Part shown: one piece after another, positions 28,941-63,786 of the stretch
Position numbering within the stretch: position 1 is the first letter of the stretch
Layout of the letters: the number at the start of each line of letters is the position of its first letter
Origin: Amphiscolops sp. MND2022
Lineage: Eukaryota
Assembly: GCA_964187785.1 (NCBI GenBank)
Contig: OZ076410.1
Coordinates: forward strand, 55,304,001-55,368,000
Direction of reading: 5' to 3'
DNA length: 64,000 nucleotides
Notes under the pieces: generated by a model
Told to the model about the DNA's origin: nothing
The model's database searches: none
The model's input: only the letters and a program-made list of their open reading frames with translations
Translations under genes and position numbers: made by a program

Positions 28941-30530
28941 AGTCAAAAAACGTAATTGTAGAAAGTGTAAAGTAGTCATTTAATGTATTTTGATCACTAC
29001 GCGTAACGTCAAGTCACACAGTGTAGCGAGAAAAAACTCGTAACGCGTATGTGAAATAACAACGCGTTTTTATTGGCTGTTATTCGAACTAGCAAACTCC
29101 TGCTAGTTCGTTGTGACATATGTATCGTAATACAATACTGACTACAAAGACGTTAATAACAAGATTGAATTTTCTGGACAAACGAAAGCAAGGGTGAAAA
29201 CCAGGAACGTTACACTTCAACTACCAATACAATTTACGAAAGCAACCATAACATCGTTAATGGTACTAGATTGGATGAAGCGTCAGGGAATAGCAATAAA
29301 CGAATGGAATTATTGACAGTGGTACGGAGAAGAGAACGCTTTAGAGTAAAACTTTCTGGAAATTCGATCTAATTTTTTTCTGACCATTACGCACTAGAAA
29401 CACTATTCAAAAAAAAGATTTAAAAAAACAAACTTTGCAAGGTTGACAAGTTGGTTAGATAAATTGGCACACACACTTCAATACAAAAATTAAGCACATC
29501 GCCGATAAACGTCTCCATTTAACTGAATATCTCAGAAGAAATCTTATAGCTAATCCGGAACCATTTGAGAACTAAGACGACTGAGAACTACGACAGTTGA
29601 AAATATCGTAAGAGAAGATCCATCAGAGGAAACATATGTAATCGTCTGACCTCTACTCTTACAAAATGTAATGTACCAGCCAGTAATACAGTCTAGTATC
29701 AAATCAAATATATAGTAATACAACAGAGAAAACAGTTTTACGTTCATTCTACTATTGTTTATCCGATACAATGAACTGGTTTCAAAGTACAAGTACATAA
29801 TCAAAGTTATTGTGAATACATACGTCTCTTTTGAAACCAAAAATTGATAGTTCAGGCACACGCTTTTTGTACTTAGTCGGGTACTGTTTTCAATCTAGGC
29901 TAACACGCAAAGGATTAAGGTTATCTATTTCTGTTTATCATTCAGTCAGGGTTTTTCGTGTAGCTATGTACAAACATGTCTGACATATCTACCACACAGG
30001 AAAAAGCGTCTTTTTATGCCTTCGTTTTTTTGTATTGACAAGTTTAGACAGTTTTCTAACAGTTCCAGCGATTGTACTTCAACACGATACATATGCCGCA
30101 AAAGTGGAATTTATTATCAAGTGTAAAGTGTATTTTCCGCAAAACGAGAGCGAACCGTATTCTAGTCAAACAGTGAATCGTGTTCATCGCGGATTGTGAC
30201 GCACAATGTAATCAGAGATCGCGGAATGAGATCATTGAGCGTAATTAGAGAAAAGTGGATACCAGTAAAGAATTTTGGTACAGACCGTGATTAAAGATAA
30301 CTCCAAACGATGTTTCCATTCGTGTTTGAAGTGGAAACTAGTCAAAGTACGTAATTGTAGAGAGTGTAAAGTAATCATTTACTGAGTTTTGATCACAAAA
30401 CGTAACGCCAAATCACACAGTGTAACGAGCAATACTCGTAACGCGTATCTGAAATAAGAAAGCGTTTTTTAGGCTGTTAATCGATTTAGCAAGATCTTGC
30501 TTGTTGGTTGCGGAATAAGTATCGTAATGG
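28941..30530 (+). repeat. Diverged ~190-bp direct repeat pair (28941-29130 and 30340-30530)
   Basis: Shared AGTCAAA..ACGTAATTGTAGA.AGTGTAAAGTA...TCACACAGTGTA.CGAG...ACTCGTAACGCGTAT.TGAAATAA. Confidence 0.8.
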
Positions 30531-30679
30531 CGCCTAGCTGATCAAATCTCATTGGTTCAACGAGCCTCGATCGCTTGCTAAAATCAGAGACCTCAATAAG
30601 TTACCGTCTTTAGGGGATGATTTTTACAGGAAACTTATACCAAAAGATTTGTCTGATTTTTCTCAATCCCATGATAGTT

Positions 30680-33516
30680 TTCGTTTGTTGAAATCGACAG
30701 GAAAACAAAAACGGGAGCACTTTTTTATTCATAAGGCTAGAATTAAATGAAGCCTTACACTTGGTGAAACTCCCACCAGATATCCAATTTCCAAATATAT
30801 CCAAATAACTACAGATTTCATCTTCGTTTTCGAAATTCATGAGATCAATGTTACTTTTTCGAGAATTTGCATTTTACCAAATTGAATCATTTCGAATAGT
30901 TTAGGTGGTATGAGACTGCAAAATTAGCTTTTTTGTAGAGCCGACGTTCTGTACTAGAATTTATAACTTGTCCGAGGAATTTTATTCATGCGATAAAATA
31001 ACGTTCCTCTAGCAGACAAAACCTTGTCAAAGTCTGACACCCTAAGATAGACTATAAATTCAAGTGATTGCTTTTTTTTCCAGGCGACCCTACAATGGCT
31101 GAACTACTCAAGCAAGTACGCTAACTGAATTGTAGAAGCGCCACCACGCTTCCACGAATTTCTTGAAAGATACCCCATCAGAAAAAATGAGGGCACAGCC
31201 CCAAGTTACAGCATGCGAATTGAGTTGGACCTCAGTCTTGAAGTGCTTGGATACTTTAAAGAAAGGTGAGTCAGAAATGACCTAATTCATTACACAAAAT
31301 CAATGGAAGAGATGGAGTACTGATTAGGGCAGTGAAAGAGGGGTATGCCATGAAAAATATTTCATTCAGAAAACAGATGCTTGTGTCACCTGTAGTCGTT
31401 CCAATTGAAGAGGGGAACTTTTTGTCGACCAGCTAGATGGAATTAGTCTTACCACAATTTCTTACTTTCAGCTACGACCGGGAAAGCATGAAGAACCTTA
31501 CAAGAAAAAGAGAGTGACGATTCGAGAAGAAACAGAAGATACAGACGACGAAAACAATTGCAACATCCGAACTGAACTGCCTTCTAAAAAGAAACCGAAT
31601 TTAGCAAAAACGCTTACTGGAGGACGAGCCGAACCTTTTCGAAATAAACCTGAAGGTCGTGTAGAGCTTGTTTCCATCCCAGTCAAAAACGGGTAGCAGT
31701 TAAAGGGGACATCGTGAACGTGACGGGCACTGAGTTCTCGTTGAGGGTGAATGGATTTTCATTGAAGACTCGAGACTATTCATCCACGTTGAAAAAGAAG
31801 ATGACCCTTTCTTCAAATCAACAGTACCTCTTTCTTACATGAAGAAAGATCTGCCTCTGCCATTTGATAGTACCCAGATGTAGTACCTTTTGACAATAAT
31901 TATGCTAAAGTTTACTGGGCGTACTCTAATCTGAAGCACTTGCTGATGCATTTTTAAAGCGATCAACCTAGAAATAGGGAATTCAACAAAGACATTTCGC
32001 CAAGCTGCTCCGTTTTAATGTATGCGTTTTGTATTCCGGCAGAAGGGGGTTCAGTCACTTACAGTTTGACAGAAGAAGGACAATACTCAACAGCTGTTTT
32101 TGTTTGTTGAAATCGACAGGAAAACAAAAATGGGAGCACTTTTTTATTCATAAGACTAGAAATAAATGAAGCCTTACACTTGGTGAAACTCCCACCAGAT
32201 ATCCAATTTCCAAATATATCCAAATAACTACAGATTTCATCTTCGTTTTCGAAATTCATGAGATCACTGATACTTTTTCGAGAATTTGCATTTTACCAAA
32301 TTGAATCATTTCGAATAGTTTAGGTGGTATGAGACTGCAAAATTAGCTTTTTTGTAGAGCCGACGTTCTGTACTAGAATTTATGTCTTGTCCGAGGAATT
32401 TTATTCATGCGATAAAATAACGTTTCTCTGGCAGACAAAACCTGGTCAAAGTCTGACACCCAAAGATAGACTATAAATTCAAGTGATTGTTTTTTTTCCA
32501 GGCGACCCTACAATGGCTGACTACTCAAGCAAGTACGCTAACTGAATTGTAGAAGCGCCACCACGCTTCCACGAACTTCTTGAAAGATGGCCCATCAGAA
32601 AAAATGAGGGCACAGCCCCAAGTTACAGCATGTGAATTGAGTTGGACCTCAGTCTTGAAGTGCTTGGATACTTCAAAGAAAGGCGAGTCAGAAAAGACCT
32701 CATTCGTTACACATAACCAATGGAAAGAGATGGAGTACTGATTAGGGCAGTGAAAGAGGGGTATGCCATGAAAAATGTTTCATTCAGAAAACAGATGCTT
32801 GTGTCACCTGTAGTCGTCCCAATTGAAGAGGGGAAATTTTTGTCGACCAGCTAGATGGAATTAGTCTTACCACAATTTCTTACTTTCAGCTACGACCGGG
32901 AAAGCATGAAGAAGCTTACAAGAAAAAGAGAGTGACGATTCGAGAAGAAACAGAAGATACAGACGACGAAAACAATTGCAACATCCGAATTGAACTGCCT
33001 TCTAAAAAGAAACCGAATTTAGCAAAAACGCTTACTGGAGGACGAGCCGAACTTTTTCGAAATAAACCTGAAGGTCGTGTAGAGCTTGTTTCCATCCCAG
33101 TCAAAAACGGGTAGCAGTTAAAGGCGACATCGTAAACGTGACGGGCACTGAGTTCTCGTTGAGGGTGAATGGGATTTTCATTGAAGACTCGAGACTATTC
33201 ATCCACGTTGAGAAAGAAGATGACCCTTTCTTCAAATCAACGGTACCTCTTTCTTACATGAAGAAAGATCTGACTCTGCCATTTGATAGTACCCAGATGT
33301 AGTACCTTTTGACAATAATTATGCTAAAGTTTACTGGGCGTACTCTAATCTGAAGCACTTGCTGATGCATTTTTGAAGCGATCAACCTAGAATTAGGGAA
33401 TTCAACAAAGACATTTCGCCAAGCTGCTCCGTTTTGATGTATGCGTTTTGTATTCCGACAGAAGGGGGTTCAGTCACTTACAGTTTGACAGAAGAATGAC
33501 AATACTCAACAGCTGT
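30680..33516 (+). repeat. Tandem duplication, period ~1419 bp
   Basis: GTTTGTTGAAATCGACAGG at 30683 and 32102. Paired ORFs are offset by 1418-1419 bp, with scattered substitutions. Confidence 0.95.
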
Positions 33517-33650
33517 GTGGGACACTGTTTTGGGACACGAATGGGACAAAGTTGAGAATGCGACATTTTGTGTCGTTTCACTGAAGTTCAAAATCGACAA
33601 AACTTGCAGTCTCAATTTCAACAAAAACATCTATGTCCACGTCGTTCTAG
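30960..33650 (+). pseudogene. Decayed multi-exon gene of unknown function, partly duplicated
   Basis: Strong acceptors (TTTTTTTTCCAG, TCTTACTTTCAG) and a GTGAGT donor flank protein-like frames (ATLQWLNYSSKYAN*IVEAPPRFHEFLERYP; LRPGKHEEPYKKKRVTIREE) that contain stops. Confidence 0.45.
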
Positions 33651-33906
33651 TGTCAAATGTTACTTATTAGACAATGTCTAGTTACCGGAGCCTTGCAAAG
33701 GAAACAAATCTCTGAGAATCAAAACTTTTCAGTTTCAATTTGTTTTATCATGTTTTTTTATGTTGTGTTTTGTATGCTTCTTGACCTTTTTTGCTTTTAT
33801 GCAGTGATATGATTCGTGTACTGAGACTTGTTCGTCCTTCAATTCACTGCTGGTCACCAAGGGCTACTGCTGGTCTTTAAATTTATAGTATTAAGGTCAA
33901 CTTTAA

Positions 33907-34268
33907 CATGGTCATTCTGACCTACTCATGTTTTTGAATATGGTCACTCATACCTATTTCTGTTTTTGTGATAGTCACTCAGACCTACACATGTTTTTGA
34001 CATGGTCACTGAAACCTATTCTTGTTTTTGACATGGTCACTCAGACCTACTCATGTTTTTGACAAGGTCACTCGTACCTATTCCTGTTTTTGACATGGTC
34101 ACGCATACCTATTCCTGTTTTTGAAATGGTCACTCAGACCTATTCAAGTTGTTGACATGGTCACTCACGCCTATTAATTTCATCTTTGAAATGGTCACTC
34201 AGACCTTTTCATGTTTTTACCATGGTCAGTCAGACTTTTTTCATGTTTTTGACGTGGTCAGTCAGCCC
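33907..34268 (+). repeat. 31-bp minisatellite, ~12 units (CATGGTCACTCAGACCTACTCATGTTTTTGA)
   Basis: Periodicity is directly visible. Two subtypes largely alternate. Confidence 0.93.
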
Positions 34269-34905
34269 ATTTAGTTTCTTACTAAGATTATTTTAAGAAA
34301 ATCTTCATGGTCCCATAAGTTTCAGTCATCATGTCTTCAAATGACAATGCTCTCGCCCCTTCTACCTCAGTAGCATGCCCTTGCGATTCTACCCCCGCAG
34401 CATCCACACCTCGATATTCTCCGTCGAGCAAGCTTTTTCACTGCGGACAAGGAATTTGTAACTACTCGTCGAAAGTGAAAAACAACGTCACGCGCCACCA
34501 GAAGTCCACCTGTCTCCGTGAGTCAAGGGAGGAGTGGGAGCTCAGGCAGCGAACTTGCCAGCAAACTTGCCAGGCAGCGTACAAGCCTATTTAATTTCTT
34601 ACTAAGATTATTTTAAGAAAATCTTCATGGTCCCATAAGTTTCAGTCATCATGTCTTCAAATGACAATGCTCTCGCCCCTTCTACCTCAGTAGCATGCCC
34701 TTGCGATTCTACCCCCGCAGCATCCACACCTCGATTTTCTCCGTCGAGCAAGCTTTTTCAATGCGGACAAGGAATTTGTGACTACTCGTCGAAAGTGAAA
34801 AGCAACGTCACGCGCCACCAGAAGTCCACCTGTCTCTGTGAGTCAAGGGAGGAGTGGGAGCTCAGGCAGCGAACTTGCCAGCAAACTTGCCAGGCAGCGG
34901 ACAAG
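34264..34905 (+). repeat. 320-bp tandem duplication containing the Zn-finger start exon
   Basis: ORFs 34331 and 34651 are near-identical and offset by 320 bp. Confidence 0.95.
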
Positions 34906-37430
34906 TACTGATGCAGGCCAAGTTCACGAAGAGGCATCAGTTGACCAAATACTGTGTAAAGCAGCGTGACCTCAAAAGAAAAGTAGAAGCGATCACCATG
35001 TACAAATACAGTAAGCGATTTGTTCATGCCAGTAAACAAATATATTTAGATTTTTAGCCTAAAGTCAAATCGCCAATTTGTTTTGATCATGCCAGTAAAC
35101 AAAATAATCTAAGCTTTGAACATCAGATCAATTCGCTAAGTTCATCTCATCATGCCAGTAAACAATTTTATTCGAGCTTTGAACATCAGATCAAACTATC
35201 AGTTTGATCTAATCTTGCCAGTAAACAAATTCAAGTTTTGAACACCAGATCAAATCTGTTTCAAAGTGAAAACTATGATTGTAAATTATAGAGGCAGCAC
35301 GAGGAGAGAGACGCCAGAACCACAAGTGCTATGGATGTGGCAAGGTCTTCTCGTATTCGTACGACCTGCAAGTCCACATCTCCAAACATCCGGTCTGCAA
35401 GGCACAAGTGAGGTATTGCACTATCATATCAATGATGTAATTTTATTGCATCATTGACTCACAAAATCATTCTTTATCCAAAATGATCCAAAATATTATC
35501 TGTCAATTTGACCCACTATCGTTCTGCTCGGTATCAACTCTCTAAGTATTCTAAGTATCATTTTAGTAAACTCAAACTCTATAGTATCAGCTTCTACTTT
35601 TATAGGTTGACAACCTAACTGATTCCCCTTCATCAAGCGAGTGCCCCGCTCCAAGAGACTTTCATGCCAAGCCCCCTGATGTTTTTGGCTTCTCCGCATA
35701 CTTCCAATTTGCTTTGACGTACCTCTAAGTTCCCCGATGTTCGCCATAGCAAGATGCAATGGCACCATAAAACCAAGCGAGAAATTCTCTCAGTTGATAA
35801 GCAATGGTATCCCCAAAGTTTAGCAGAGCGGGGTTGATCATTCTCGGCATTTCAAACAGCCTCTAGCCAACAAGCTATTTTTTCGATCAGCTTGTCGAAC
35901 TTTTCCAATCACAGAATCTCCAGGATGCTGATCTTACCATAAACGTCAAGTCAGCAAAACTTGGACAGGTAAAACTGATCAAGTATTTAATATCATTTCT
36001 AACCAAAATGATTTTCTCGAAACAGTAAATATTTGAACTAATGGTTAACTTCTGGGGTGTGTTTTGCCCATTTTTCTAAATTTTAGACACGTGATTCGTC
36101 CCTCGAGGCTGTGCGGGATGAGTTCCACCGGAATGACACCAGCAGTCCTTTCCACCCTCTGAATGTAATCGACATTCAGTTGAAACCGAAGGTACTACTC
36201 CTGTTTACTGTCACGATCGGTTTGAGATAAATCTCATTTAGGTTATCACCTGATTTTGGTTACTGTCATGATCGGTTTGGGAAAAATCTCGATTTTTTAC
36301 AGAAATTTTACACTGTCCCGATGATGATTCAGCAAACATCCATCAATCACTTTGTTGTTGAGATCCTTGGAGACAGACCAGAACCATTCTCTTGTGCTAC
36401 CTCATGTTTCCTGCTCGTGTCGAACGATGGATGTCAGACCACTTGGCACCAGGATTTCTCGGCAACGTCTGTGGTGTACAGTGTACTCACGGGTGAGAAG
36501 ATTTTTTTCCTGGTAGCATTGACGCAGAGTAATATTGAGCTATTCAACCAATACACCAGCCAAAAGACCGACGCACAGTTATTAAACTTAATTTTAATCT
36601 TGCTGAATTTCATTGTACTCGATATGTTTTAGGATATCGAACCAATTCATGTTCTTCTGTTTTGTTGAAGTCCAACATTTTTTGCTTGCCATAAACGTTT
36701 AGAGGGCGGGTGTGCCGTGATCACTCTCAAATCTGGTGACATACTTGTGACGCCATCACAATTCCTGCGCTTCGTCCTCACGAAAGGGAACTCGATTGTT
36801 GTAGGATCAAACCTTCTCGTAGAAGGCCATTCCGATTTCATTCGGTTGTCCATTCAGAATGACTCATCCTTTCCAGCCCATGACAAATTCCCCTGCCTTC
36901 CTGAGCTGTTCACCATTTTGCTTCACAGAGCTGCACAGTCCTGTATGATGATCAGAGACTTTCGTGTGTTGCATAGGGCAACCGAGAGCATCTGCAATGA
37001 ACAGGACGTGCAAAGATTGAGAATAGTTGTTCCGAACATGTTGTCCTCAATTTTGTAACAGATACACTGTATATTGAATGATTAATTGTTTTTAGAATGA
37101 GTAGTATTCAAGATGACAAAGATATTGAGTATTCACATCTTTTACTTTCAGCTCTACCCGCGTTTCTCTAGAGAATATCTTGACAATCAGATTTTCACCC
37201 ACTGCAGATTTGACAACCAAGTCTCTGTAGCATGCCTGTCAGACCTTTGCCGTTATTTGAACCTGTCCCGAACATACTATCCTGCAAAATGGACAAGGAG
37301 AAGCGATGACGGCGACAGAATTCCTGACAGCGCAATCACAGATGATGAGCTGATCGTTCTGGCGCCATACCCCTTACTATCTTCTTCAGTAGCATCCCCC
37401 CAAAAGCGGCAGTACGACCGGCACATCTAA
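34651..37430 (+). pseudogene. Multi-exon C2HC/C2H2 zinc finger + JmjC (KDM2/KDM7-like) gene, partly decayed
   Basis: Proposed exons: 34651-34837, 34894-35010, 35292-35407, 35606-35968 (frameshifted), 36087-36191, 36303-36577, 36671-37058, and possibly 37152-37430. Fingers: CGQGICNYSSKVKNNVTRHQKSTC and CYGCGKVFSYSYDLQVHISKH. JmjC: LNVIDI, FLLVSNDGCQTTWHQDFSATSVVYSVLTGEKIFFLV, CAVITLKSGDILVTPSQFLRFVLTKGNSIVVGSNLL. Confidence 0.8.
35024..35265 (+). repeat. 63-bp tandem array (4 units), mostly within an intron of the ZF-JmjC gene
   Basis: TCATGCCAGTAAACAA-like starts at 35024, 35087, 35150 and 35213. Confidence 0.88.
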
Positions 37431-38360
37431 ACTTCTGAAGTTGTTGCGTACCAGCTTCCTTCCGCGGCAGAGACTATGAAGTCAATCGGAATATTGAAAT
37501 ACAACTCCATTCTCCGTTAGACAGGTAATTCGTACAAATTTAATCTCAAGTGTACTTCAAATTTCATTCCAAATTATATTTGGAAAACGACAACATTCAA
37601 CATGAATTAAATCTGGTCACCAGTTGTGATGTTACTTACGACTCATCAACTTTTTGAAAGCTATCATTCTAGCGTTTGGTAGTAGCAAAATTATCATCAT
37701 ATTATTGAAAGAATATCATTCTGAATTTATAATTTTCAAAATTCAAGCCCCACAGGAATCGTTTTTTCGCCGCCATCATGAGTCAGGTGGTACAAGCGTG
37801 GTGCGCTTAGTAGCTGATGTGTGAACAAACATGGCAATCTTCCCTCAGTCAGTGCCATTCAGTGCCTCCGAACTCATTCAGTGCCATGTCGTCTCCTACC
37901 AAGCTTACAGGCTGTATGCTACAACTTCCCGTCCTTTATTATTTAAACTTAGATTAGTTGAAGCCAGGGATTGGGAAAAAGTAATGCAGTAACAATGACC
38001 CTAGTGATTCATTAAGTGTTAATGGACACCATGACCCTTTTTTTACTTTAAATGAAAACCTAACTTATTTCAAATGCAATGGTTTTTTTTCTGCCCACCC
38101 ATCATCAAAACTGTTTTGGGGAAAATTACAAAACAAATTTCAAAATTGTTGAATACGGAGTGTATTTTTCCATAACAGGCAGTTTACTTCTATTGGATTA
38201 GTTTTTTTCATTTGAACAAAACATTTTTCACACATTTTGACTGTCAAAAATTAACTGTGTTTAGTTACTTAGACCGTTGCGTTTTCAACAAACAAGCGTC
38301 ACGCTGACGATAACTTTTTTTGACTTGACCGATATGGCTCGAATTGTGCACATATTTTCC

Positions 38361-39343
38361 GGTACTCCTGACAAAATGTGGTCCCTACAACAATTATGCA
38401 GCCGGCCTGAAAACTCCTGAATAGGTGTGGTCCCTACAAAATTCATGCAGCCGGCCCGGAAACTCCTGACTAAGTGTGGTCCCTACAAAAATTATGCAGC
38501 CGGCCTAAAAACTCCTGACTAAGTGTGGTCCCTATCAATTTTAGAATAGCAAACGTAAAGTAAACATTACATGTACAAAATAGCAGAATTCAATTTACTA
38601 GCTTTTAGTGATGTAATACACCTGACTAAGTGTGGTCCCAAGGAGTTTCTGCTCACTGAGTGTGGTCTCTATAATGAAAGTGTTGCCCATACACATTTTG
38701 TCGGAATAATTATCATAACGTAGACAGCTATGTTCATATACCCCTAGTTCCCTAAATGCTGGTGCGGAGCGAAGCGAAGCGGAGCGACGCTCCATACAGC
38801 CATACCTCAATGTTGCTACTTGGCGAAGGGAGCGAAGCGACAGAGCCATACTACAAATCTGCTAACCTTTTCAAATCAAGTTCCATACATATTGGCCGTA
38901 ACAGCACTAAAAGGTCGTAAATTGAATTCTGCTAACTTGAACTACATGTAATGTTTGATTTACGTTGGTTATTCTAAGATTGCTAGGGACCACACTTTGT
39001 CAGGAGTTTTCAGGCTGGCTTCATAAGTTTTGTAGGGACCACATTTAGTCAGGGGTACCAGTTTTAATACAGCCAATGTATATGGAGCTTGATTTGAAGA
39101 GGTTAGCATATTTGTTGTATGGCTCGCTCGCTTCGCTCCTTTCGCCAAGTAGCAACAATGAGCCATGGCCTTTTGGCCAACCGCTTCACTTCGCTCCTGC
39201 ATTTAGGGCACTAGAGGTATGTGAACATAGCTGACTACGCTATAATAATTATTCTGACAAAACATGCAGGGACCACATTTACATTATAGGGACCACACTA
39301 AGTAACGAGAAATCGCTTGGGGCCAGACTTAGTCAGGAGTGCC
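38361..39343. mobile_element. MITE (GG-terminated TIRs, Merlin-like) with an inverted copy of itself inserted at ~38621-39059
   Basis: Outer termini GGTACTCCTGAC...GTCAGGAGTGCC. The X-Y-X'-Y' pattern of inverted homology resolves as a nested insertion. A 49-bp unit repeats about 3.5 times at 38365-38536, and GCGAAGC motifs are present. Confidence 0.75.
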
Positions 39344-40129
39344 CAATTTCTTTTATTACAAGTCAACGTAAACGCGCCTGACTTTCCTCCTTAAATACTT
39401 GTCGAAAATCATTTCAAAATGCTAGTTATGACTCATCGGATAGTCTATAGACCGATTCATTTTCTTTTATTACTGCAGTAACTGACCCTGAATGATTGCA
39501 GTTCCTTTATTGTGAAAATTGTTTGAATTTTTTGAAATATTTACATTTATTTTGAATTGTAGCTTAGTTGATCATTATGACTTTTTGTTATGGTGAAAAA
39601 AACAATCATTGGAAAAAAACCATGATGACGAAACCCTTAAAGATACCATGGTGAGAAAAATGATCAAATCAATACTTTTCTCGCTAAATTTTTTTATTTC
39701 TTTCTCAGTGAAAAACGGAGGTCAACAAAAACTCGAGGATCTTTTCTCAGAATTTCCCAGGCTATTAGTTCCCCCACAGTAGAATCAAAATAATAGATCA
39801 AAGTCTAATTAAGACTGCGTGAATTGACAAGGGAAAAGTGTGTATCTGGCTTCTAAACTGTCACCAGCAAACATGCTCTGCAACAAATATGCTCTTCTGG
39901 ATCTGTACTTTTATATAGTTTTTGATTTTTTTTTCCAAATAACTTTCAATTTTGGAAAAAAAGTCATTACCGGGAATTGAACTCAGTCCCAAAGATCCAC
40001 AGCCTTGTATTTTACCATCTAAGCCACCGATACTTGTAATCAGTACTTTATAATCTTGCACTGTTCCACAAATTGCGGTAATTGATTTAGAGTATAGTGG
40101 GGAATTTAATTGGCCGACGATTTGTTAAA

Positions 40130-41180
40130 TTAAACTGTTCTGATCATGACATTAGGCAAAAGTTTCAACCGTAACTTTATGATTAGAATCACTTAGAAGT
40201 CAAAACTAATCATCATTCAATGATGATGTCTTTTCACTTCAACTAATACATTAACCCATTGGATTACTCGAAGTCACACCACGTGTATTTTTCATTGAGA
40301 ATACTCTCTGAACAAAATTATCTTTTCTCTAGAAAGCTTTTTTCTCTACACGAAACAACCTGCAGCAAGCAAACTCTGAAATATAAAAAATGTGTGGTGA
40401 ACTGATATTAAAATTGGAATAATTTAAAATTATAGTGATTTAAATTAAGTTTGAATAATTTTTATTTTTATATTTATAGTTTAAATTTTTGAACTATATA
40501 AAATCGATCAAAATCAACACTTTTGTTTTTTATCGAAGACAGCGGAAACTAGTTTTGAGTCCTGGAAACTTTCTGAGTCGAATCATTGTTGAATTTCCTT
40601 GTTAACTCGGTTCGTTTTCTTTCGATATCTTATTGATTGAGTCCCGAATTATGTGGGTCCTTGAAGTTGAGATATGTGGGTAGTTCTGGGGTATCAGTTT
40701 TTCTTGGGAATAAAATTTTCCTTCTGCATTCAGGGCATTCCACTTCACAGACTTTCTCGTTGTTTTCCTCAAATAAACAAAACATCACTACTTGTCAAAA
40801 CTTCCAATACTGTGTTGTTCTTTCTAAAAGTTATTCACAATATGGCGAACACTTACAAAACGAGTTCCAACATCAAACCTTTAACAGTTTTAAAATTGAA
40901 TCAATTGAAATGAAAATTTTGAAATTCCCGAAAGAAAAACGAAAATAATTTTTCCAAAGCTTTTTTTGTGATTTGAACTAAGTGCTAACTGATCATGTCA
41001 GTAGGCAAAATTTTCAACCGTTACTTTAATGATTTGATCTAAGTGCTGACTGATCATGTCAGTAAACAAAAGTTTTAAACATAAACTTTATGATTTGAAG
41101 TTTCGTGATTGAATTCAAATCATTAGAATTCAACACTAATTATCTTTCAATACTGATGTGTCTTTAAATTTACTGAAACA
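40130..41180 (+). repeat. Direct repeats related to the 63-bp array (40130-40260 and 40980-41180)
   Basis: TGATCATGACATTAGGCAAAAGTTTCAACCG / TGATCATGTCAGTAGGCAAAATTTTCAACCG / TGATCATGTCAGTAAACAAAAG. Confidence 0.7.
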
Positions 41181-41599
41181 TCAAGCAAAGAAGTGAAATT
41201 ATTCCATTGCAATTTTCACAACAATGTTTAGAAAACCATCTTTATTATAGGTAAATCAATGACTCACAAAACGCGTAAAAATATCAAGTTCACTACTGTG
41301 CTACACTATTTGACTAATTTACACCACGTAATTAGTAAGACGCCGTAATTCTGTCAAAATGTGTAGTGAAAAATCGCGTTATTTAGTCAAAGTGCGTAGT
41401 ACCGCATAAGTGTGTAATAAATTTATGCTCCGGAAAATCGTTTAAACCTGTCAATTATTGAATTCTAGTTATTCAGTGTAACTAAAAATCACTTGGTGTA
41501 ATATGAGAAATAGGTAAATCTGTATTTATGATATTAACTCACAGTGATTGGTTATTCAAGCAAGTCTCAAGATATGGGAACTTGATTGCGGGGATATTT

Positions 41600-44500
41600 A
41601 TCGTAATGGTACAACACAAGTACTATTTGGATGACTACCTCGATTCTGTTCTGTTGAGTGTCCTGAAACTGCTTTAAAACTGAATTAGAGCTGTTTGAAA
41701 TGCTCAAACTGGGGACTTCAAGTTAACAAAATTCATTAGTAACACAAACGATTCATCTGAAACACTTGAGCGTCCGTTCCTGTCCCACAAACTGAAGAAA
41801 TATTCCAACACCCAACGATCACGTCGCATGTTTTAGGTCTCAAGTGGGATCACAAAGCTGACCTTTTGAATGTGAGCCTAGGCGTCGAATCGAAGGAAAA
41901 TCGACCCAACACACAACGCACAGTGTTGATCACGGTCTCAGCCGTTTTCGTTCCGCTGGGACTTGTCGCACCCGTCGTGATCAAAGAGGTCATCCATAGG
42001 ACTCGGAAAAAGGGGTTCCCTCAGTGAAAACCTCGAGAACCAGATGTTGACGAGAAAATTTCCCAAATTCTTTTTTTTAATATAAAAAAAATCTTCAGTG
42101 AATCGCAGTGTGCCGAAAAATCAAACTTAAGGTGGCCCTATATGCTCGCAAAGCTCTATGCTCTGCCAAAAACCAAAGGGGAACTTCGATTGAAAAATCT
42201 TCGGAAAGAATTGTATATTGTAGAAACAAGCCGGGACCGGCCCAAGTCGGCGCCATATCCAAGGCTCAAAAATAGCAAAAAGACTTCCAAGTGTCAAGTA
42301 TTCGTTTACAGTAGTCGAAAATCAAAAATTTTTCGAAATTTTTTTTGAAAAAATTACATACTAAAAAAATGGACCGAGTGGTGCGCCGGGGCTCGCTACC
42401 GCGAGCCCCTGGCGCGCTAACGTCTCACAATGCCGAAAAACTGAAAGGGCGGACCCTTTGAGGTTTTTCAACATCCATTCTGTCGCAAAACATGAAAATA
42501 TTGAAGAAAAAAATTTTTTTATTTTCGGGAGAAAATCTCACAATGCCGAAAAAAACTGAAAGGAGGAACCCTTTGGGATTTTCCAACATCCATTCTGTCG
42601 CAAAACATCAAAAAAAATGCAGGGGGGACCCTTTGAGGAAAAAAAAATTTCGAAAAAAAATCCGAAAAAAATGTCTCGCAGTGCCGAAAAAAAATTGAAA
42701 GGGGGGACTCTTTGGTCTCGCCCGGTATGATATGTTACGCGGAAAAACAGGTAAAACCATTTTGGTCCTGTTCGCTAGGCCAAATGGTGCTATTTGACAC
42801 CATAATAATTTGTAGAACTTTTAAGAACTATTTTGGTCAGTTCGTGTGGATAGAAAAAAAAGAGTCACTATAATAGTCGCGTTTCACTTCATGAAGCGCC
42901 GACTAAAAACCCAATGGAGGACGCTTTGGTTTTTCCTCTACTTTTGCAAGCTTGAAAAGATAAAATTTCGGTTTTATGCGAGACTCAAACCGACGTGCTC
43001 ATGGTTTTCATGCCTCAGAAAATTTGGGTTAACCTTTATGCCTCAGTCCTTCAATGGCTTGCTTCAGCAGATAAACAGCCTGTTTTTGCTGCAAACCGCG
43101 AAGCGGAAATTCTCAAAACCACAACATTTGACCAATTCTCTCACGTACATACTGCTAATGATCCTGCAGACGCTGGAACGCGCGGGCTCGCTGCAGCAGA
43201 TTTTCCAAGTTGTTGCTTGGTTGAAGGGCCTAAGTTCCTTCGAACATCCGACAGACCGTTTAAACTGGAACCATCAGCAATCTACGCTATTAAACCAACG
43301 GAAACGTGTGCAATTGACAAATTACAGTCCAGCTAGCTGTCAGCGGCGTCATAGCTTGACTCCGCCGTCATAGTTTGGAGTAAGCATAGCTTTTATCTCG
43401 AGCTCATCCGAATTGTCGTTTACCTTCTTTGGTTTTCGCCTCGTTACCGCCATTTTTGTTCCATTAATGGCAAAACTGAGGACCCGAGCGAAATGGGGAA
43501 TGCCGAAAAAAACCTACTCAACTTGTCGCAAATAGACTCTTTCCCTATCCATCTTCTTGCCGCCAAACGTTAAAAGACCGTAAATCTCCGTCTCCTATCA
43601 AACTTCCCTCTCATTGGGCCTGATACTTTGGTACGCTCACAGGGCCGACTGCGGCGTCTTTCAGACGTTGAATGCGACATGAAACACCCCGTAAAACTTG
43701 ATGGCAAACATCCTTTCATCAAGTTAATGCTAATACATCTGCATCAAAATTACCATCACCTAAATTTAAATATGTAAGACCCAAGTGGGCCATAAGTACA
43801 TCATTCTGAAGATCCGCTCTGTTCTTCGAACCATCCGCTCCACTGCATTCCTTGTCGAAAACGTGACGCCGTAATCGTAAACCACAAGATGCCCGACTTA
43901 CCGAAAGAAAAACTTGGCTATCTGGAGCCAGCCTCCAGTACCTGGGGGTGGAATACTTTGGCCCCTTCTTTGTTTTTTTCGGCACAGCTCGGAGAAAAGA
44001 TGGGTGTTCCTGTTTACGTGTCTCACCACCCGAGCAATGAACCTGGAAAAATTTAGTTCTATCGACACCAGTGCGTGCGTTGTCGGAATTGAAAGCTTTA
44101 TAGCTCGGCGAGGAATGTCCAATGTAACATGATCCGACAATGGAACAAATGTTGGCGAGGCTGAGAAAGACCTCGTCTAGGTCACTCGTCGCTGGAATCA
44201 TTTCGGGACCACCGCACTCGTGTGCAAGGGTATTTGTTGGAAGGTGAATCCTCCTGGCGCATCAAGGTGGGTCCTGGGAAAAGTAGCCCGGAGTTACAAG
44301 AGAGTCCTATACAGTATCTCGGGAACCGTCGAATGACAGATGAGACTCTGAGCACTTCCTTCTGCCTCGTTGAACAAGCATAATCGCCCGCTGACGCCCG
44401 TTAGTGACCACCTGAATGAAATGGAAGCGCTAACGTCTAATCACTTTCTTTTAGACCGAATATTCCGTGCCTTACCAAGTCTAGTTCCGGGAGATGAACC

Positions 44501-44790
44501 AGATCTCTGTCGACGGTACACTAAAGCTCAAGCCTATTCCAATGCTATATGGTTTAGGTGGATGCAAGATTACGTACCATCGTTGCATAAGCGTGGTAAG
44601 TGGAACAAGTGGAACATGTCGATAGTGCAAACCCATGATGTTGTTATCCGCTCGCTCGCATAACCTCGTCGCGTTATGGGGCCGAGTTGCGCGCTTCTAC
44701 CCGCTCACTTGTTCGTCAGCTGGTCAAACTTGCTGCGGTCTTTGGGCCACTATCTTCGTTGGGGGCGGAGGCTGTTGTTGACAAACAACA
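41600..44790 (+). mobile_element. Decayed BEL/Pao LTR retrotransposon pol with PPT and LTR remnant
   Basis: YYLDDYLDS; SHVLGLKWDH..TQRTVL..VPLGLVAP; KQPVFAANREAEIL..DPADAGTRGL; GVEYFGPF..KRWVFLFTCLTTRA..IARRG..SDNGTN; RPLTP..LTSNHFLL. PPT GGGGGCGGAGG precedes TGTTG at 44773. Confidence 0.92.
41991..42910 (+). mobile_element. Non-autonomous Helentron/HINE-like repeat inserted in the BEL element
   Basis: Short inverted repeats AGTCGGCGC (42245) / GCGCCGACT (42896), a 3' hairpin at 42876-42903, and internal repeats of TCTCACAATGCCGAAAAA.CTGAAAGG..GACCCTTTG. Confidence 0.55.
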
Positions 44791-46581: not shown

Positions 46582-46824
46582 CTTAGCGCTTTCCGTTACA
46601 AACGATATCATATCATTTTTTAATTGAGATTATGAAAAAACCATTATCATTTAGTGATGAAAGAAATAAAGATAACATATTTTACCGCTGGAATAACTTC
46701 GAATGAATACAAGTAAAAAAACTTGCGACAAAGCTGAAACGTTGTTTGATTGCGCCAAAATGATAGTGCCAAATTAGTCAAAAATAAGTCACGTGGAAGA
46801 AAACTGGATTTTGCTAATGACTAG

Positions 46825-48456
46825 TGTCGCAGGCTCCCGCCTGCGATGGGAACTTTTACACCATCAATTACAGCTGTTTTCGCGCCCTCCCAGGTACTCT
46901 GCCAATAAACTAGAGGAAAGGACCATGTGTCCCATTGTCATGACGGGACAAAAACTTCAAACTGAATTTGTAATATTTTTACGGCATGTCTATTATTCTA
47001 TTTCCAGTTTTGACAGCCTTATATATAAAATCTTGTGCAAATTATTAATCGGAAATACCATTTGGTTAGTTGAAAACTACGAAGTTGATTTTGATACACC
47101 GATGCATGTAAACACTGTATGTTTAATGTATTAGCTAAGAAATTGGACACCAAGGCGTACAGGAAAGGAAACGAGTTCAAATGTTTCCTCTCCTGTCTCG
47201 CTGGACACGCAGTCCGTCCAAATTCTTAGCCAATCAGAACACGCCATTCATTTCATTCACTGTGCGCAGTATTCTAAATTAAAGGACTCTAAGGCCACGC
47301 GCCGTCAGCTAGTAGTAATTTGCTGCCTATTCACGGCAAATGGACACTGAGTCCAAATTAAAGTAAAGTGCAATTTACAGTGGTAAATAAGGGCTATGAT
47401 TGGTGTTTCTAATAAATACTCGTTTTGATGAAGATTACTGGACCATTTGTACCATTTGATGCTAGATATTAATAATTTACATGAATACTCAGATTAATGA
47501 GTTGGTACATGTAAGTTATGGTTGATCAAATGTAATTGCATGTAATGTTGCTTAACCTCACATATGAAAGGCCTTGAGGGATGCTTGGACCTACAATCCT
47601 TCTATATATGGAATTGTTGAAGGCGCTTGAATAAATCACCCCTTTTGAAGTGACCCTTTCGTCATGCCGCCTTCATGGCTATAAATAGTAGGTGCTATTT
47701 TTAGATAGCTGTGAAGGCTATTTTTAGAACGTGACCCTCATTATTTTGCAAGTCATGTAAACCTGAGTATATATACCGTGGACCCTAGGTCCCAAGGACT
47801 TTTTCAATTTCCTTGATACTGTAATACTCAAACTTGTTAAAATCGTTTCAACATACTCTGTTTGCAAGCCTAAGAACTTAATTTAAATTCTTACCTCTTG
47901 CAATAAACTCTTATGCCTTCCACAAGAAGACAGAAAGCGAAAGCTAGAAAATCCAAAGAGATGGACATGTTGTCCGATATGGATAATTTAGACGTGATGA
48001 TAGGGAGTGAAAATCCTTTAGAAAGAGAGTTAGCAGATGTAATAGACCAATCTTCCATTAATGGTGACATAGAAATTGGTAGTCACTCAAGAAATGATCT
48101 TGGAAATTTCATTCAAGGAAATGAGCCTCATGGTCGAAACGACATAAGACAATCCTTTGAAACCTTTTCAAATGAATTTAATCTTAGGTTATCTCAAGAG
48201 ATGGATTCCATGATGGCCATGGTACATAGTCAGATAAATAGAGCAATCAGTACCGCCATATCAGAGAAGGTGTTACCTGAGATTCAGAATATTGTGAGTT
48301 CAATGTCTTCCTCTGGGAACAGGGACACTGAGATGAGTATGTCTCCTAGCAGTCAGGAAAATAGGGAAAATTCATCTGGCTTGAAAACAAAATTATTGAA
48401 AAAGGATTCACGGTCCGTTGGTGATTTGAGAGACACCACGGGACGTGGCTCTTACA
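46825..48456 (+). mobile_element. LTR of copy 1 (1632 bp)
   Basis: TGT...ACA termini. The start matches the post-PPT TG of the 26037 homolog, and the end abuts the PBS TGG. CCAATCAG ~47230, TATAAATA 47680, AATAAA 47902. Confidence 0.8.
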
Positions 48457-49595
48457 TGGTGACAGGAGCTAACGAAGCCCAACAGCCTATACCTGAATTT
48501 CTTACTGGACGAATCCACTCAATCCCGAACCTAGAGAGACAGCAATCTAACCACAATGTCTCTTTGGACACCACTCTGCCAGCGCCAGAACCAGAGGTCA
48601 CAGAGCCACCTCAGGACCCGCTCAATAGATTGGCTGATGTACTAGTCAATTTGCAAAACAAACCCCAAACGATGACTATCCGGCCTGTCCAAACAACCCC
48701 TATGACGTTTGACGGAAAGAGTGAGAAATTCGAACTCTTTGAAGATTTGTTCCACACAATGATCAAAATGCAACCGGCCATGACAGAGCAAATGAAAATT
48801 AACCATTTCCATTCACTGCTCAGGAAAGGAGCCTTGCAGACCTTCAGGAACATAAACTCAATTAACCGCCAAACACTCGAGGACGTGCTGATCATATTCC
48901 GGAGAAAATATGTCAAACCGGAATCCCAAGCAACGGCAAAACACAAATGGCATCGGCTGACTTTCGATCCGAATACCATGAAACTGCCGGATTTCTTAGA
49001 AGAACTGAACCAGGGGGCAGAAAAAGCTTTCGGTGAGAATGCAAAAAACATGATTGACAGCTTATTGTATGCAAAACTGCCTCCAAAATTAAAACGATCT
49101 GTCAATATGGCCCGCCTGGAGAACGGGACATATGAGGAAATCGTCGCTCATCTTGAAAGAGAGCTTGAACTCAACGCATTAGAAGAGTCAGACGATTTGC
49201 CAATCGCCACAATGGCCTCTGCGTCCACCAGTAACAACAATCTGCTCTCTAATGGCATAAATACTAATAAGAACGCACAATGCTCTTATTGTAAAGCCAC
49301 AGGCCACTTTTATAAGAGCTGCCCCAAATTGAAAAAGAAGAAAGAATTGGAGGACAAAAATGGCAAAAAGCCCCAACGTCCCACATACCCAGAATGTCCT
49401 ACTTGCGGAAAGAAAAATCACCCCGTTGAAAGATGCTGGAAAGGGGCTGGAGCACATCTACGTCCCAAAAGGACAAGACCCGAAGATAAAGCCGATGAAA
49501 ACTCCGGCGATGAAAAGTTGTCTAAAAAATCAACTAACCCCGAAACTGCATCTTCGAGCCAACCAAACCCACGAAAAACGGACTCAAAAAACTAA
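47913..49595 (+). CDS. gag: Gag, 560 aa, two CCHC knuckles
   Basis: CSYCKATGHFYKSC and CPTCGKKNHPVERC, plus a capsid-like central region. Confidence 0.96.
   Translation: MPSTRRQKAKARKSKEMDMLSDMDNLDVMIGSENPLERELADVIDQSSINGDIEIGSHSRNDLGNFIQGNEPHGRNDIRQSFETFSNEFNLRLSQEMDSMMAMVHSQINRAISTAISEKVLPEIQNIVSSMSSSGNRDTEMSMSPSSQENRENSSGLKTKLLKKDSRSVGDLRDTTGRGSYMVTGANEAQQPIPEFLTGRIHSIPNLERQQSNHNVSLDTTLPAPEPEVTEPPQDPLNRLADVLVNLQNKPQTMTIRPVQTTPMTFDGKSEKFELFEDLFHTMIKMQPAMTEQMKINHFHSLLRKGALQTFRNINSINRQTLEDVLIIFRRKYVKPESQATAKHKWHRLTFDPNTMKLPDFLEELNQGAEKAFGENAKNMIDSLLYAKLPPKLKRSVNMARLENGTYEEIVAHLERELELNALEESDDLPIATMASASTSNNNLLSNGINTNKNAQCSYCKATGHFYKSCPKLKKKKELEDKNGKKPQRPTYPECPTCGKKNHPVERCWKGAGAHLRPKRTRPEDKADENSGDEKLSKKSTNPETASSSQPNPRKTDSKN
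48457..48468 (+). promoter_or_regulatory. Primer binding site TGGTGACAGGAG (probably tRNA-Leu-like); copy 2 at 57282-57293
   Basis: TGG directly follows ...CTTACA. It differs by one base from TGGTGTCAGGAG, the complement of common animal tRNA-Leu 3' ends. Confidence 0.65.
49586..49592 (+). promoter_or_regulatory. -1 ribosomal frameshift heptamer A-AAA-AAC; copy 2 at 58411-58417
   Basis: A canonical X-XXY-YYZ site in the gag frame immediately before TAA. The -1 frame is open (KLISPRLQICNK) into the pol ORF. Confidence 0.85.
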
Positions 49596-52500
49596 TTTCG
49601 CCACGACTCCAAATATGTAACAAGATGTCAGTACGACAGTACGTCATATCTGACCCTGCAAACATTACATATAAACAAACTCAAAACGACACCACAGGGA
49701 TGCCATCGACTGTCTGGCAGCAGCAGATGGCCGACGCCCGCAGAGAAACTCAATATATCATCCACAGTGATCATCCATACTTATATCGACGGAACAGTAA
49801 CCGCAACGACTTGGAAACTCACTTTCGCCCTTTAAAAACTGTCGAAGATTATAACCCTCAATACTATGACCCCGAGTATGGCAAAGACCCATACTGGGAC
49901 GAAGAACTATATGACAAAACCAATTTACAATTTCGAAATGAAGATTACCCCCCAACTGACGACGAGGACGACCCAGACATTGAAGATAACACACTGTCTC
50001 GGGCCCTTATTGATCTTTGGCAGCCGAACTTTGAGGCAACTATACAAGAAGTAGACACCATACACACACAGGAGGACCACAAGGCTCCTAATAGTCTTTT
50101 AGACGAGACAGTCTTCTTACACCTCCTAGTGACCAACGAAGGAGAATTACCATACGTTCCCCTTTCAACAAACCTTGGACTTAAATTCAAACGACGAATG
50201 CTCTATTTCCCAATGGACTTTGGGGAATTAACTCTAGATGGCCTGATAGACACTGGAGCTCACTCCAGTGCAATCCCGGAGGCAGACCTCAGGAAAATAC
50301 GCCTATTGGCCCCTCAATCCATTGTAAAAGAAGGTCCTGCCCCATCTTTCCAAATAATGGTCGCAAATGGAGACTTAGAAAACCCAAAGAGCACAGTCGA
50401 ACTAAAATTCGAAGTGGGCGACATAGAATTTCACGAAATTTTCATTGTAATGGAAAAACTGTCAAGCCCCATAATTGGACTAATGTTCCTTCAAAGGAAC
50501 CACACTGTCCTGGATATGCGCCAAGGTATACTCAACTTCCCCTATTTTTCGATGCAACTCAAGACGGCTGACCATAAATACTCAAATGTTTTGGAACCCA
50601 TCCTCAATCCTGAGGATGTCACAATTCCGCCCAATGACCATGTGGTCATACCCATTCAATCACAAATTTACGCAGAAAATGCAGTTACGGGCATATTGCA
50701 ACCCAGCGATCTTCTGCACGAAGAAGGCGACATAACCTTCTGCGCCGCCATAGTCACACTACACGAAGGGGCTATGAGAATACACGTTAACAATTTCACT
50801 GATCAACCCTATAAAATAAAGAAAGGGATGCACATTGCAAACTTCTCAGTGATGACCCCTGAACAGATGAAACACGTCAGGCCAATAGACCCAGTGTCCA
50901 CCTGGCACTTACTGAATGAAAATGAAGACGACGCTATTTATTATATAAGTAGCCTTCTTAAAGCTAACAGAAATAATGACCAATACGAACAATATTGGTT
51001 CCCGACGCCTGAAAACCCAGGGGACGAAACGACCCACACCCCAATACAACAAAGAATTCTCAAAGAATTACGAAATCTGCAAAGTTTAGAACAACTCAAC
51101 CCGCACGACGATGCGGAATCTCGTCGAAAATTCCTCAGTAATTTTGATTGGAAGGATTCAATGTTACAACAACATGAAATCAGACAAATAGAAACTCTAT
51201 TAGTGGAATTCCATGACATCTTTGCGCGCCATAGATTTGACATTGGTGTCAATGAGGAATTTACGGTCAAACTGACCCCAAAAGACGAATCACCTGCCTA
51301 CAGTCAGAGCCTACCTACACCAGTCAACCTCAAAGAGGACATATTGGTCGAACTGGCGTTACTTCATAAATATGGTATTATAACGACATTACCATTCTCA
51401 AAGTATGCCAGTCCCATCTTCGCGCAGAAAAAGCCCAATGGGAAATTGAGACTGTTGGTTGATTTGAGGAAAATAAATAATCTCATCTCAGACGATTATA
51501 TCAACAACAATCACCCAGTCAGTACCCTGACGGATGCGGCGCAACATATGGCAGGCAAAAAGCTCTTTTGCAAACTTGACTGTTCTCAAGCTTATCATTG
51601 CCTTCCTATGGCAGACCAGAAGTCGATTGAAATGCTAGCATTTAACTTCGCCAGCAGGACATTTGCATATAGAAGATTAGCCCAAGGACTCAGTAGAGCC
51701 CTGTCGGCCTTCTCCAGTTTCATGAGGGAATACTTGGATCGTGTCATAAAAGCAGACCAATGTGCTCAATATGTGGACGATATTGGTGTTGCGGCGACAG
51801 ACGCCGACCAGCTTATCGTCAACTTAAGAGCAACTTTCCAATGTATCAGAGAAGCAGGATTGAAATTGTCCATGCACAAGTGCCATTTCGGCGCTACTGA
51901 AATTGACTTTCTTGGGAGAACCATTACACCTGAAGGCGTAAAACCCCAAAAAGAAAGAATCACTAACTTCTTGGAAAAGACGAAATTCCCAAAGTCCAAG
52001 AAGGCCTTACAACGCTACCTTGGTTTCCTCAATTACTACAGGAATTATATTCCAAGGCTATCCGAAAAACTAGTTCCCTTCTTCCAATTGCTCAAAAAGG
52101 ATGAAAAAGTACTAGTTACGCAAGAGCTAGTTGAACAATTTAATGAGATCAACCGCGATTTAGACCGATGTAGTCAATTGGCGTTGAAACAACCTCTGCC
52201 GAACAAACAACTGGTCCTTATGACTGACGCGAGTTTTACAGCAGCCGGTTACGCCATATTGACCGAAGACGACCCAAATCAGAAATACACTTCTGTTAAA
52301 AAGTCCTATGCGCCGATTGCATATGGATCCAAAACTTTCACGCCTTCTCAACTTAAAATGTCGATATATGCAAAGGAATTCCTAGCTATATATTATGCAT
52401 TTAAGGAGTTTGGACATATCTTCTGGGGAACACCTCAACCCGTGATTATCCTCACAGATAACAAATCGGTCACGAGGTTCTTCCAGACAAAGATAATTCC

Positions 52501-54785: not shown

Positions 54786-54961
54786 CTAGATATGTAAATT
54801 AACGTCCAGACAGCCTTTTAGGCTACTTGATTTTCTTACTATTTTTTCACTGGACTTCCCAACTGATACAAATGAAAACAAAAATCAAGAAATTTCAACA
54901 AACGAGATAATATGATAAATACAAGTTGACAGAATATGAAACAAATGTACTCTATGTACAT

Positions 54962-63610: not shown

Positions 63611-63786
63611 CTAGATATGTAAATTAACGTCCAGACAGCCTTTTAGGCTACTTGATTTTCTTACTATTTTTTCACTGGACTTCCCAACTGATACAAATGA
63701 AAACAAAAATCAAGAAATTTCAACAAACGAGATAATATGATAAATACAAGTTGACAGAATATGAAACAAATGTACTCTATGTACAT

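Follow-up and report, generated by a model that had tools for sequence, protein, structure and literature searches.

The 64,000-nucleotide stretch of Amphiscolops sp. MND2022 DNA analysed here (contig OZ076410.1, positions 55,304,001 to 55,368,000; hereafter the window) contains, at 34651-37430 on the + strand, a broken gene for a zinc-finger and JmjC protein. We consider it highly probable (roughly 85%) that this is the pseudogene of a cargo gene, within what remains of a large cut-and-paste DNA transposon that has decayed and lost its 5' part; it is no paralogue of the host KDM genes. The initial annotation of this DNA had described a zinc-finger and KDM2/7-like JmjC gene and had suggested that it might be mobile cargo. 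The identity was borne out by the matches of profiles of exons 5 and 6 to solved structures in the PDB. The idea of mobile cargo is supported at the level of the family, whose elements have terminal inverted repeats, a transposase of modelled RAG1/Transib fold and an insertion that splits an integrase gene; the window element itself has neither transposase nor SET gene, and its JmjC copy is dead.

Alignment of the window to five related loci (L001-L005) resolved a eukaryotic gene with short introns and seven exons, each placed by the GT-AG borders shared in that alignment:

Exon 1 (E1), 34651-35010, + strand: finger 1, C-x4-C-x12-H-x5-C; in the relatives also finger 2, C-x2-C-x12-H-x5-C
Exon 2 (E2), 35292-35407, + strand: classical C2H2 finger (HKCYGCGKVFSYSYDLQVHISKH)
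Exon 3 (E3), 35606-35968, + strand: N-terminal part of the JmjC fold region
Exon 4 (E4), 36087-36191, + strand: reading frame kept
Exon 5 (E5), 36303-36577, + strand: first half of the JmjC core
Exon 6 (E6), 36671-37016, + strand: second half of the JmjC core
Exon 7 (E7), 37152-37430, + strand: C-terminal tail

The JmjC region thus defined comprises E3-E6. Intact relatives encode two C2HC-type fingers in E1 and one C2H2 finger in E2, three in all, and finger 2 is whole in the relatives only, being broken in the window copy; a C2HC and a C2H2 finger had been recognized initially, and the total of two fell short because the second C2HC finger had been overlooked. The E2 finger reaches 30.5 bits against the Pfam zf-C2H2 cut-off of 25.2, and finger 1 stays under the cut-off for zf-H2C2_5 (22 bits vs 27). 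No PHD, CXXC or F-box domain was found in any exon, the Pfam matches upstream of the core being zinc fingers only. The end of the protein is shifted among copies by a run of C in E7 (about 37396) that varies in length.

Because both halves of the core separately match PHF8, KDM7 and KDM2A with the ligands aligned, the gene is identified as a zinc-finger and KDM2/KDM7/PHF8-type JmjC gene. The E5 open reading frame (ORF) of the window alone matches PHF8, KDM7 and KDM2A in the PDB at E values of 3e-7 to 5e-6, and a profile of E5 built from 17 diverse family members matches the solved structures of PHF8 (3.4e-13), KDM7 (4e-11), KDM2A (9e-10) and PHF2 (4e-8). The E6 profile, which is independent of that of E5, matches Caenorhabditis elegans KDM7A (3.3e-4), KDM2A (2e-3) and PHF8 (0.03), and in the KDM7A and KDM2A alignments the family His falls on the third iron ligand. 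At the thresholds used, the significant matches were to KDM2/KDM7/PHF only, with no other JmjC group among them. The catalytic positions of the window copy are as follows:

36435-36437, + strand: Thr three residues N-terminal of the first His (TTWHQD), 2-oxoglutarate contact, E5
36444-36455, + strand: HxD iron motif (WHQD), present in the window copy, E5
36492-36509, + strand: GEKIFF with the Lys that contacts 2-oxoglutarate, E5
36768-36770, + strand: third iron ligand, Arg (CGC) instead of His, E6

The HxD motif and the 2-oxoglutarate Thr and Lys (TTWH and GEKIF) are accordingly where the initial annotation had seen them, and its reading of the third ligand as CGC was confirmed by reads. The iron triad HxD...H is incomplete in the window copy, in which HxD is kept and the distal His is Arg. 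The codon is CAC in all five close relatives (L001-L005), and the L006 protein also has His, so that His is present in 6 of the 6 relatives that cover the position. The triad is complete in L001, L002, L003, L005 and L006, and L004 is without the first His. Across the 17 family members, GEK is invariant and Thr-Thr-Trp-His-Gln-Asp is kept in at least 90%. In the alignment to PHF8, the Thr and Lys fall on T244 and K264.

The window copy is a pseudogene that cannot make the protein and does nothing itself. Relative to L002, its E1 has a 6-nt in-frame deletion after 34700 and an 11-nt insertion at 34885-34895, which destroys finger 2 and is followed by a stop at 34909-34911; the same insertion is found in both copies of a 320-bp duplication (34264-34905). 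E3 contains four indels (-1 after 35707, -2 after 35771, -1 after 35780 and +1 at 35878) and a nonsense change, TGG>TAG, at 35821. In E6 the acceptor is weakened (ACAG>GAAG), 6 nt are deleted in frame after 36943 and the donor is lost (GT>TT at 37017). The frameshifts previously assigned to an 'exon 4' are therefore real and lie in what is E3 here, and the 11-nt insertion, the lost donor and the weakened acceptor are additions to that list. In four DNA runs of one sample, read unitigs correspond to 34870-35217, 35361-35648, 35619-35941 and 36525-36917 with 0 differences and at single-copy depth; assembly error is thereby excluded for the insertion, for the indels and stop of E3 and for the Arg codon. 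These read-supported pieces, the last of which ends at 36917, fall just short of the lost donor at 37017. No intron-skipping joints were found in the four DNA runs.

The gene is multi-copy: 24 ORF-level homologues of E5 were found at 48-87% identity, and the loci around six of them, L001-L005 and L009 (L009 and L003 being alleles), line up with the window. L001, L002, L004 and L005 are colinear with one another over >13 kb at 93-97% identity; all four of their contigs stop some 3.3 kb 3' of the JmjC core exon, three running into a tRNA-like short interspersed element (SINE), and this shared end is probably an assembly break at a repeat. L002 is open from start to stop with all ligands, a 117-nt deletion shortening its tail. 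L004 keeps its frame throughout, with its first iron-ligand His replaced by Arg (TRRQD) and a Cys in finger 1 by Ser; it may be either a young pseudogene or a non-catalytic variant. The copies in L001, L003 and L005 are broken. The JmjC protein of intact family members is about 590-650 amino acids long, with three zinc fingers and all iron and 2-oxoglutarate residues. Reads cover the JmjC core exon 30-50 times as deeply as unique stretches; as summed depth is not copy number, this is only suggestive of many similar copies in the genome. L010 is colinear only to about 37820 of the window and has an internal tandem duplication of E3-E5 (9029-12000), each duplicate containing a sequence that starts with the terminal motif of the element (CATTACGATACATG..., at 9531 and 11180); these look as if a related short element had entered the intron before the duplication.

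The ratio of non-synonymous to synonymous substitution (dN/dS) between the window and the L001 group, taken over about 575 codons, is 0.28-0.32; for the JmjC exons alone it is 0.23-0.25. The dS of about 0.30 is near the intron divergence of 0.27. The dN/dS ratio reaches 0.4-0.7 among close copies and is 0.23-0.30 between subfamilies, where it indicates purifying selection. Such values are those of a gene under selection while its lineage transposes, each inserted copy decaying afterwards. Selection between lineages combined with decay after insertion is the usual pattern for transposons.

The full element spans, in the copy formed by L003 and L008 (contig ctg182976), about 21.1 kb between a left CATTACGATACA and a right TGTATCGTAATG. 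The ends of the element are inverted repeats (CATTACGATAC...GTATCGTAATG) with 5'-CA...TG-3' termini; the terminal inverted repeat is 12 bp long, matches at 12 of 12 positions in the L003/L008 copy and has the same ends in L012 and in the window. The left terminus CATTACGATAC is at 19252 in L008 and at 17912 in L012, and the flanks of these two are unrelated to each other. The right terminus is at 15027 in L003 (and its allele L009) and at 41608 in the window, again with different flanks. Similarity between independent copies ends at one and the same nucleotide on the left (L008 and L012) and on the right (L003 and the window). Furthermore, when translated, the sequences on either side of the L003/L008 copy give successive pieces of a single BEL/Pao integrase (...AITRFIARGNPR and ISSVNGTNIVGAARE...), and on the uninterrupted BEL/Pao remnant of the window these pieces map 2 codons apart (44108 and 44133); the element has therefore inserted into an integrase gene. 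Pfam gave no placement of the left integrase flank, and the adjacency came from the BEL/Pao remnant of the window.

Two observations concern the sequences at these termini. The right terminus and the adjoining BEL/Pao integrase fragment are covered, in L003 (14872-16634) as in the L009 allele, by a tandem duplication of 882 bp. Just outside the left terminus of L012, at 18050-18514 on the - strand, a 27% identical match to the finger and E3 part probably represents a further member of the family within this nest of transposons.

The window holds the remnant of such an element, with the following parts:

30659-41608, + strand: 5'-truncated remnant of a ~21 kb transposon, colinear with L001-L005 and L009 at 72-88% nucleotide identity
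30677-33516, + strand: 1.42 kb tandem duplication, copies 97% identical
31075-32101 and 32492-33703, + strand: broken copies of the 422-amino-acid ORF of the element, within the 1.42 kb tandem duplication
33902-34272, no strand: 31-bp minisatellite of about 11.6 units, directly upstream of the JmjC gene, its position shared with the relatives
34264-34905, + strand: 320-bp tandem duplication, 2 copies, 97.5% identical, covering the 5' region and the start of E1
41597-41608, + strand: right terminal inverted repeat (tttatcgtaatg); likeness to the relatives ends exactly at 41608
41609-44660, + strand: BEL/Pao pol remnant at the right end of the element (DUF5641, E 3.6e-7; integrase region 43944-44540)

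Colinearity of the remnant with its relatives takes in the introns, the 31-bp minisatellite and the upstream 422-amino-acid ORF. Neither the transposase nor the SET gene (searched for by tblastn) was found in the window, and blastn and tblastn revealed no further copies of the JmjC gene inside the 64 kb. The BEL/Pao fragment that stands directly at the right terminus is the reverse transcriptase/ribonuclease H region of pol.

The fuller relatives extend leftwards beyond the window remnant, with the 360-amino-acid ORF, the SET gene and a large ORF pair, all of them absent from the window, and have five genes: the transposase, the SET gene, the 422- and 360-amino-acid ORFs and the zinc-finger JmjC gene. 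The SET gene scores 52.5 bits against the Pfam SET cut-off of 22.4 (E 7e-14), all 14 of its 14 PDB matches are to KMT5A/SETD8 (best E 6e-7), and its predicted product is KMT5A-like. Look-ups of the 421- and 422-amino-acid ORFs in the protein atlas were uninformative, with scores of at most 0.84. L011 represents a diverged subfamily, which has the same five genes in another order, the transposase being 75% and the JmjC exons 35-63% identical. The ~31-bp unit of the window minisatellite (33902-34272) recurs in L007 (3639-4038, 11036-11402 and 14614-15067). Within the element it forms three arrays, one ahead of the JmjC gene and one to either side of the transposase gene, the latter two being present in the L007 and L008 copies; the arrays are candidate binding sites for the zinc-finger protein or the transposase of the element.

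The large ORF belongs to a family with 432 representatives at E values of at most 1e-3 among 1.8 billion proteins. Complete members are about 1,000-1,300 amino acids long, and one 90%-identity cluster of this transposase family has 216 members on many large contigs. An AlphaFold model of one homologue, P0057, which matches the profile of the element's own ORFs at E 1.4e-170, was built on an alignment of 58 sequences, with a predicted local distance difference test score (pLDDT) of 81.5 and a predicted template modelling score (pTM) of 0.73. In a Foldseek search of the PDB with this model, the top 46 matches were all to RAG1 or Helicoverpa Transib (E 5e-6), and VIA-align gave Z scores of 19.4 over 415 residues for the RAG1 core, 17.8 for HzTransib and 16.8 for the amphioxus RAG-like protein. 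Residues 834-1000 of P0057 match BRCT repeats with a Z of about 11 and form a C-terminal BRCT tail. A protein-atlas look-up likewise pointed to RAG1/Transib. On the strength of this homologue, the transposase of the element is assigned the RAG1/Transib fold with a BRCT tail. The motifs DVYGD, SGDSPF and TEGxEKSNH are conserved in the transposase alignments and may hold the DDE catalytic residues; the last of them resembles the EGNESGNK motif of RAG1.

Several points weigh against the cargo reading or narrow what can be built on it. Most copies examined are broken. The only copy with both ends has no clean target-site duplication: its flanks (...AAGATAAT and ATTTCAAG...) repeat at most the 2 bp AT, and the flanking integrase is degenerate. 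The inverted repeat CATTACGATACA is not the Transib heptamer CACAGTG. The fold model is that of P0057, which is about 28% identical to the element's ORF; the model of the element's own ORF, from a 12-sequence alignment, is poor (pLDDT 50.7), the profile from these 12 sequences gave no match in the PDB, and the Pfam RAG1 models found no match in the element ORFs and eight long family members, where there was weak BRCT only. The Gypsy-like pol of the window belongs to a 99%-identical cluster of 504 members in the ENA data; from this identity we infer that the ENA assembly of the related loci is of the same or a sister species, and these loci are therefore paralogues, not orthologues, of the window copy. 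The runs found for the organism are of DNA only. Finally, demethylase activity, DNA binding and an anti-silencing role are predictions only.

These points have to be set against the other explanations of the locus. A host gene family might have grown by segmental or tandem duplication in a repeat-rich region, with the RAG1-like ORF and the inverted repeats as accidental neighbours. The >13 kb colinearity of L001, L002, L004 and L005 at 93-97%, the allelic state of L009 and L003 and the many local tandem duplications at the loci are all in line with this. However, independent copies with unrelated flanks cease to be alike at an identical terminal position, a BEL/Pao integrase gene is interrupted by one copy, the diverged subfamily holds the same gene set around its transposase, and the transposase-like cluster has 216 near-identical members on many contigs; we therefore regard duplication as very improbable. 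It is only a little less improbable that the gene is a passenger of no use to the element, taken from the host as a zinc-finger JmjC gene in a Pack-type-like manner and now decaying. In favour of this, 5 of the 6 close copies are broken or miss a catalytic residue. Against it, silent sites differ by about 0.3 substitutions each while dN/dS stays at 0.23-0.30, and subfamilies with only 35-63% protein identity retain all the exons of the gene together with the iron and 2-oxoglutarate residues. Moreover, related JmjC genes also adjoin genes of long terminal repeat (LTR) retroelements: in L006 (9182-20396), a same-family JmjC gene, 36-38% identical to the window by tblastn (50-51% in the core exon), is on the strand opposite an LTR-retroelement pol (RT_RNaseH and integrase) and a 680-amino-acid ORF. 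In the L006 branch, exons E4 and E5 are fused.

Two further alternatives accept the transposon and differ on the protein. The JmjC fold could be a binding module with a non-catalytic chromatin-binding or scaffold role, as in fission-yeast Epe1, a JmjC anti-silencing factor reported to have non-enzymatic functions (PMC7192584); L004, in frame despite the loss of its first iron-ligand His, is compatible with such a role. Yet HxD...H, the Thr and the GEK Lys are kept or nearly invariant across the 17 diverse members, and the third His is kept even in a relative 42% identical. This conservation is what catalysis predicts and counts against a non-catalytic role, which we judge unlikely. Least credible of all is that the window copy is still expressed, with alternative splice sites or start codons giving a truncated protein. 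E4-E6 are stop-free in their own frames and an ATG is available at 36321, but Arg replaces the third iron ligand, E6 is without its donor, frameshifts interrupt E1 and E3, and the copy has a duplicated 5' region and lies in a truncated element. The candidate that the gene is cargo of an LTR retroelement was also considered and rejected for the window, where no LTRs surround the gene and the flanking pol is on the same strand and starts abruptly at the element terminus.

If the gene is indeed transposon cargo, a function in active elements can be proposed. The zinc fingers would bring the JmjC oxygenase to particular DNA, perhaps the 31-bp arrays of the element, where the enzyme would remove lysine methyl marks, for example H3K9me, H3K27me, H3K36me or H4K20me1, these being named because they are substrates of the nearest relatives. 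In this way, and perhaps jointly with the SET enzyme, transcription or accessibility of the element would be maintained. The presence of the SET gene makes a plain model of erasing repressive marks too simple, and the element may both add and remove marks. We therefore tentatively suggest, at somewhat less than even odds, that an animal lineage of giant RAG1/Transib-fold transposons stably carries a chromatin toolkit, in which a finger-guided PHF8/KDM7-type demethylase and a KMT5A-type methyltransferase would form a possible eraser/writer pair (H4K20me1 or H3K9me), with the fingers perhaps aimed at the element's own 31-bp arrays, and that this toolkit sets the chromatin of copies or target sites.

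Compared with the KDM2/KDM7 proteins (JHDM1/PHF2/PHF8), the family is similar in that the solved relatives of both core halves are PHF8, KDM7A, KDM2A, PHF2 and C. elegans KDM7, in that intact members have the HxD...H triad, the Thr and the GEK Lys, and in that the part before the core is, judged by eye, arranged in a similar way. In contrast to them, it is without PHD, CXXC, F-box and leucine-rich repeat domains and has three N-terminal fingers (two C2HC-type and one C2H2); its core identity is only about 30-40%, it is carried by a transposon in multiple copies, and the window copy has Arg for the third His.

Transib elements are usually a few kb in length. The element described here resembles Transib and RAG1-like transposons (PMC12730594; PMC1131882) in its modelled transposase fold, with Z scores of 17-19 over about 410 residues against the RAG1 core and Helicoverpa Transib, and in its 5'-CA...TG-3' termini and short terminal inverted repeats. 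It differs from them in its size of about 21 kb, its four extra genes, the BRCT tail of its transposase, its repeat CATTACGATACA in place of CACAGTG, the failure to see a 5-bp target duplication and the want of a Pfam RAG1 match. The CACTA/Mirage/Chapaev/Transib clade has 5'-CA..TG-3' termini and target duplications of 2-5 bp (PMC12730594), a clade that the element's 5'-CA...TG-3' ends, together with a short duplication, would fit.

A literature search (JmjC with transposon, Transib or retrotransposon) returned no description of JmjC or SET-plus-JmjC cargo in RAG1/Transib-type transposons or in any animal transposon. The nearest published analogues are the fungal transposons that bear TET/JBP genes and the SET-bearing HarbingerS elements (PMC12730594). 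Fungal transposons that encode TET/JBP dioxygenases occur in the Kyakuja-Dileera-Zisupton group, Plavaka, ESTA and EnSpm (PMC12730594). Like the element here, they are cut-and-paste transposons with an Fe(II)/2-oxoglutarate dioxygenase that acts on an epigenetic mark and is proposed to counter silencing, and some lineages (ESTA) have RAG1-like transposases (PMC12730594). Unlike theirs, the enzyme here is of the JmjC protein-lysine demethylase type and not an oxidase of 5-methylcytosine in DNA, it is fused to zinc fingers and accompanied by a SET gene, and the host is an animal. HarbingerS transposons encode a SET-domain histone methyltransferase (Kojima & Jurka 2014, Repbase Reports, as cited in PMC12730594), and the VANC proteins of Arabidopsis VANDAL elements are anti-silencing proteins (PMC5735166, as cited in PMC12730594). 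Both are similar to the present case in being transposon-encoded chromatin modifiers or sequence-specific anti-silencing factors acting on their own repeats, and differ from it in transposon superfamily and protein. Fission-yeast Epe1 is likewise a JmjC protein that opposes heterochromatin; in contrast to the family here, it is a host gene product, recruited by HP1 rather than by fingers and largely non-catalytic (PMC7192584).

Transposon-borne enzymes of epigenetic marks are thus known mainly from fungi (TET/JBP) and plants (VANC), with SET in some Harbinger elements, and here an animal cut-and-paste element with a RAG1-type transposase appears to keep both a finger-fused histone-methyl eraser and a histone-methyl writer. 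If true, this would offer a direct and testable example of a transposon that alters the chromatin of its host to its own advantage. In addition, the RAG1/Transib family, the source of V(D)J recombination, gains an atypical multi-gene branch whose transposase has a BRCT tail. The copy in the window is only a fossil, and its value is that of one more dated, diverged witness of the gene travelling with the element.

Other features of the window lie around the remnant. To the left of the truncated copy (28941-30529, + strand), two more right-end-type termini of the element family are found at 29132 and 30529, each closing a ~190-bp repeat (28941-29132 and 30340-30529, 83% alike), and the adjacent 30532-30699 is weakly like the interior of the element (L008 15727-15909). 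At 46820-64000 there is a young LTR-type retroelement in two tandem copies with a period of 8825, 99.95% identical, with a DUF1759 gag, a Gypsy-like pol with dUTPase and a 223-amino-acid ORF on the opposite strand (54962-55633). The stretch 10562-19849 is occupied by a satellite that repeats about every 1.9 kb, its copies 97-98% identical, and the sequence beside it at 8246-10411 is 69% similar to the retroelement pol at 49859-52107.

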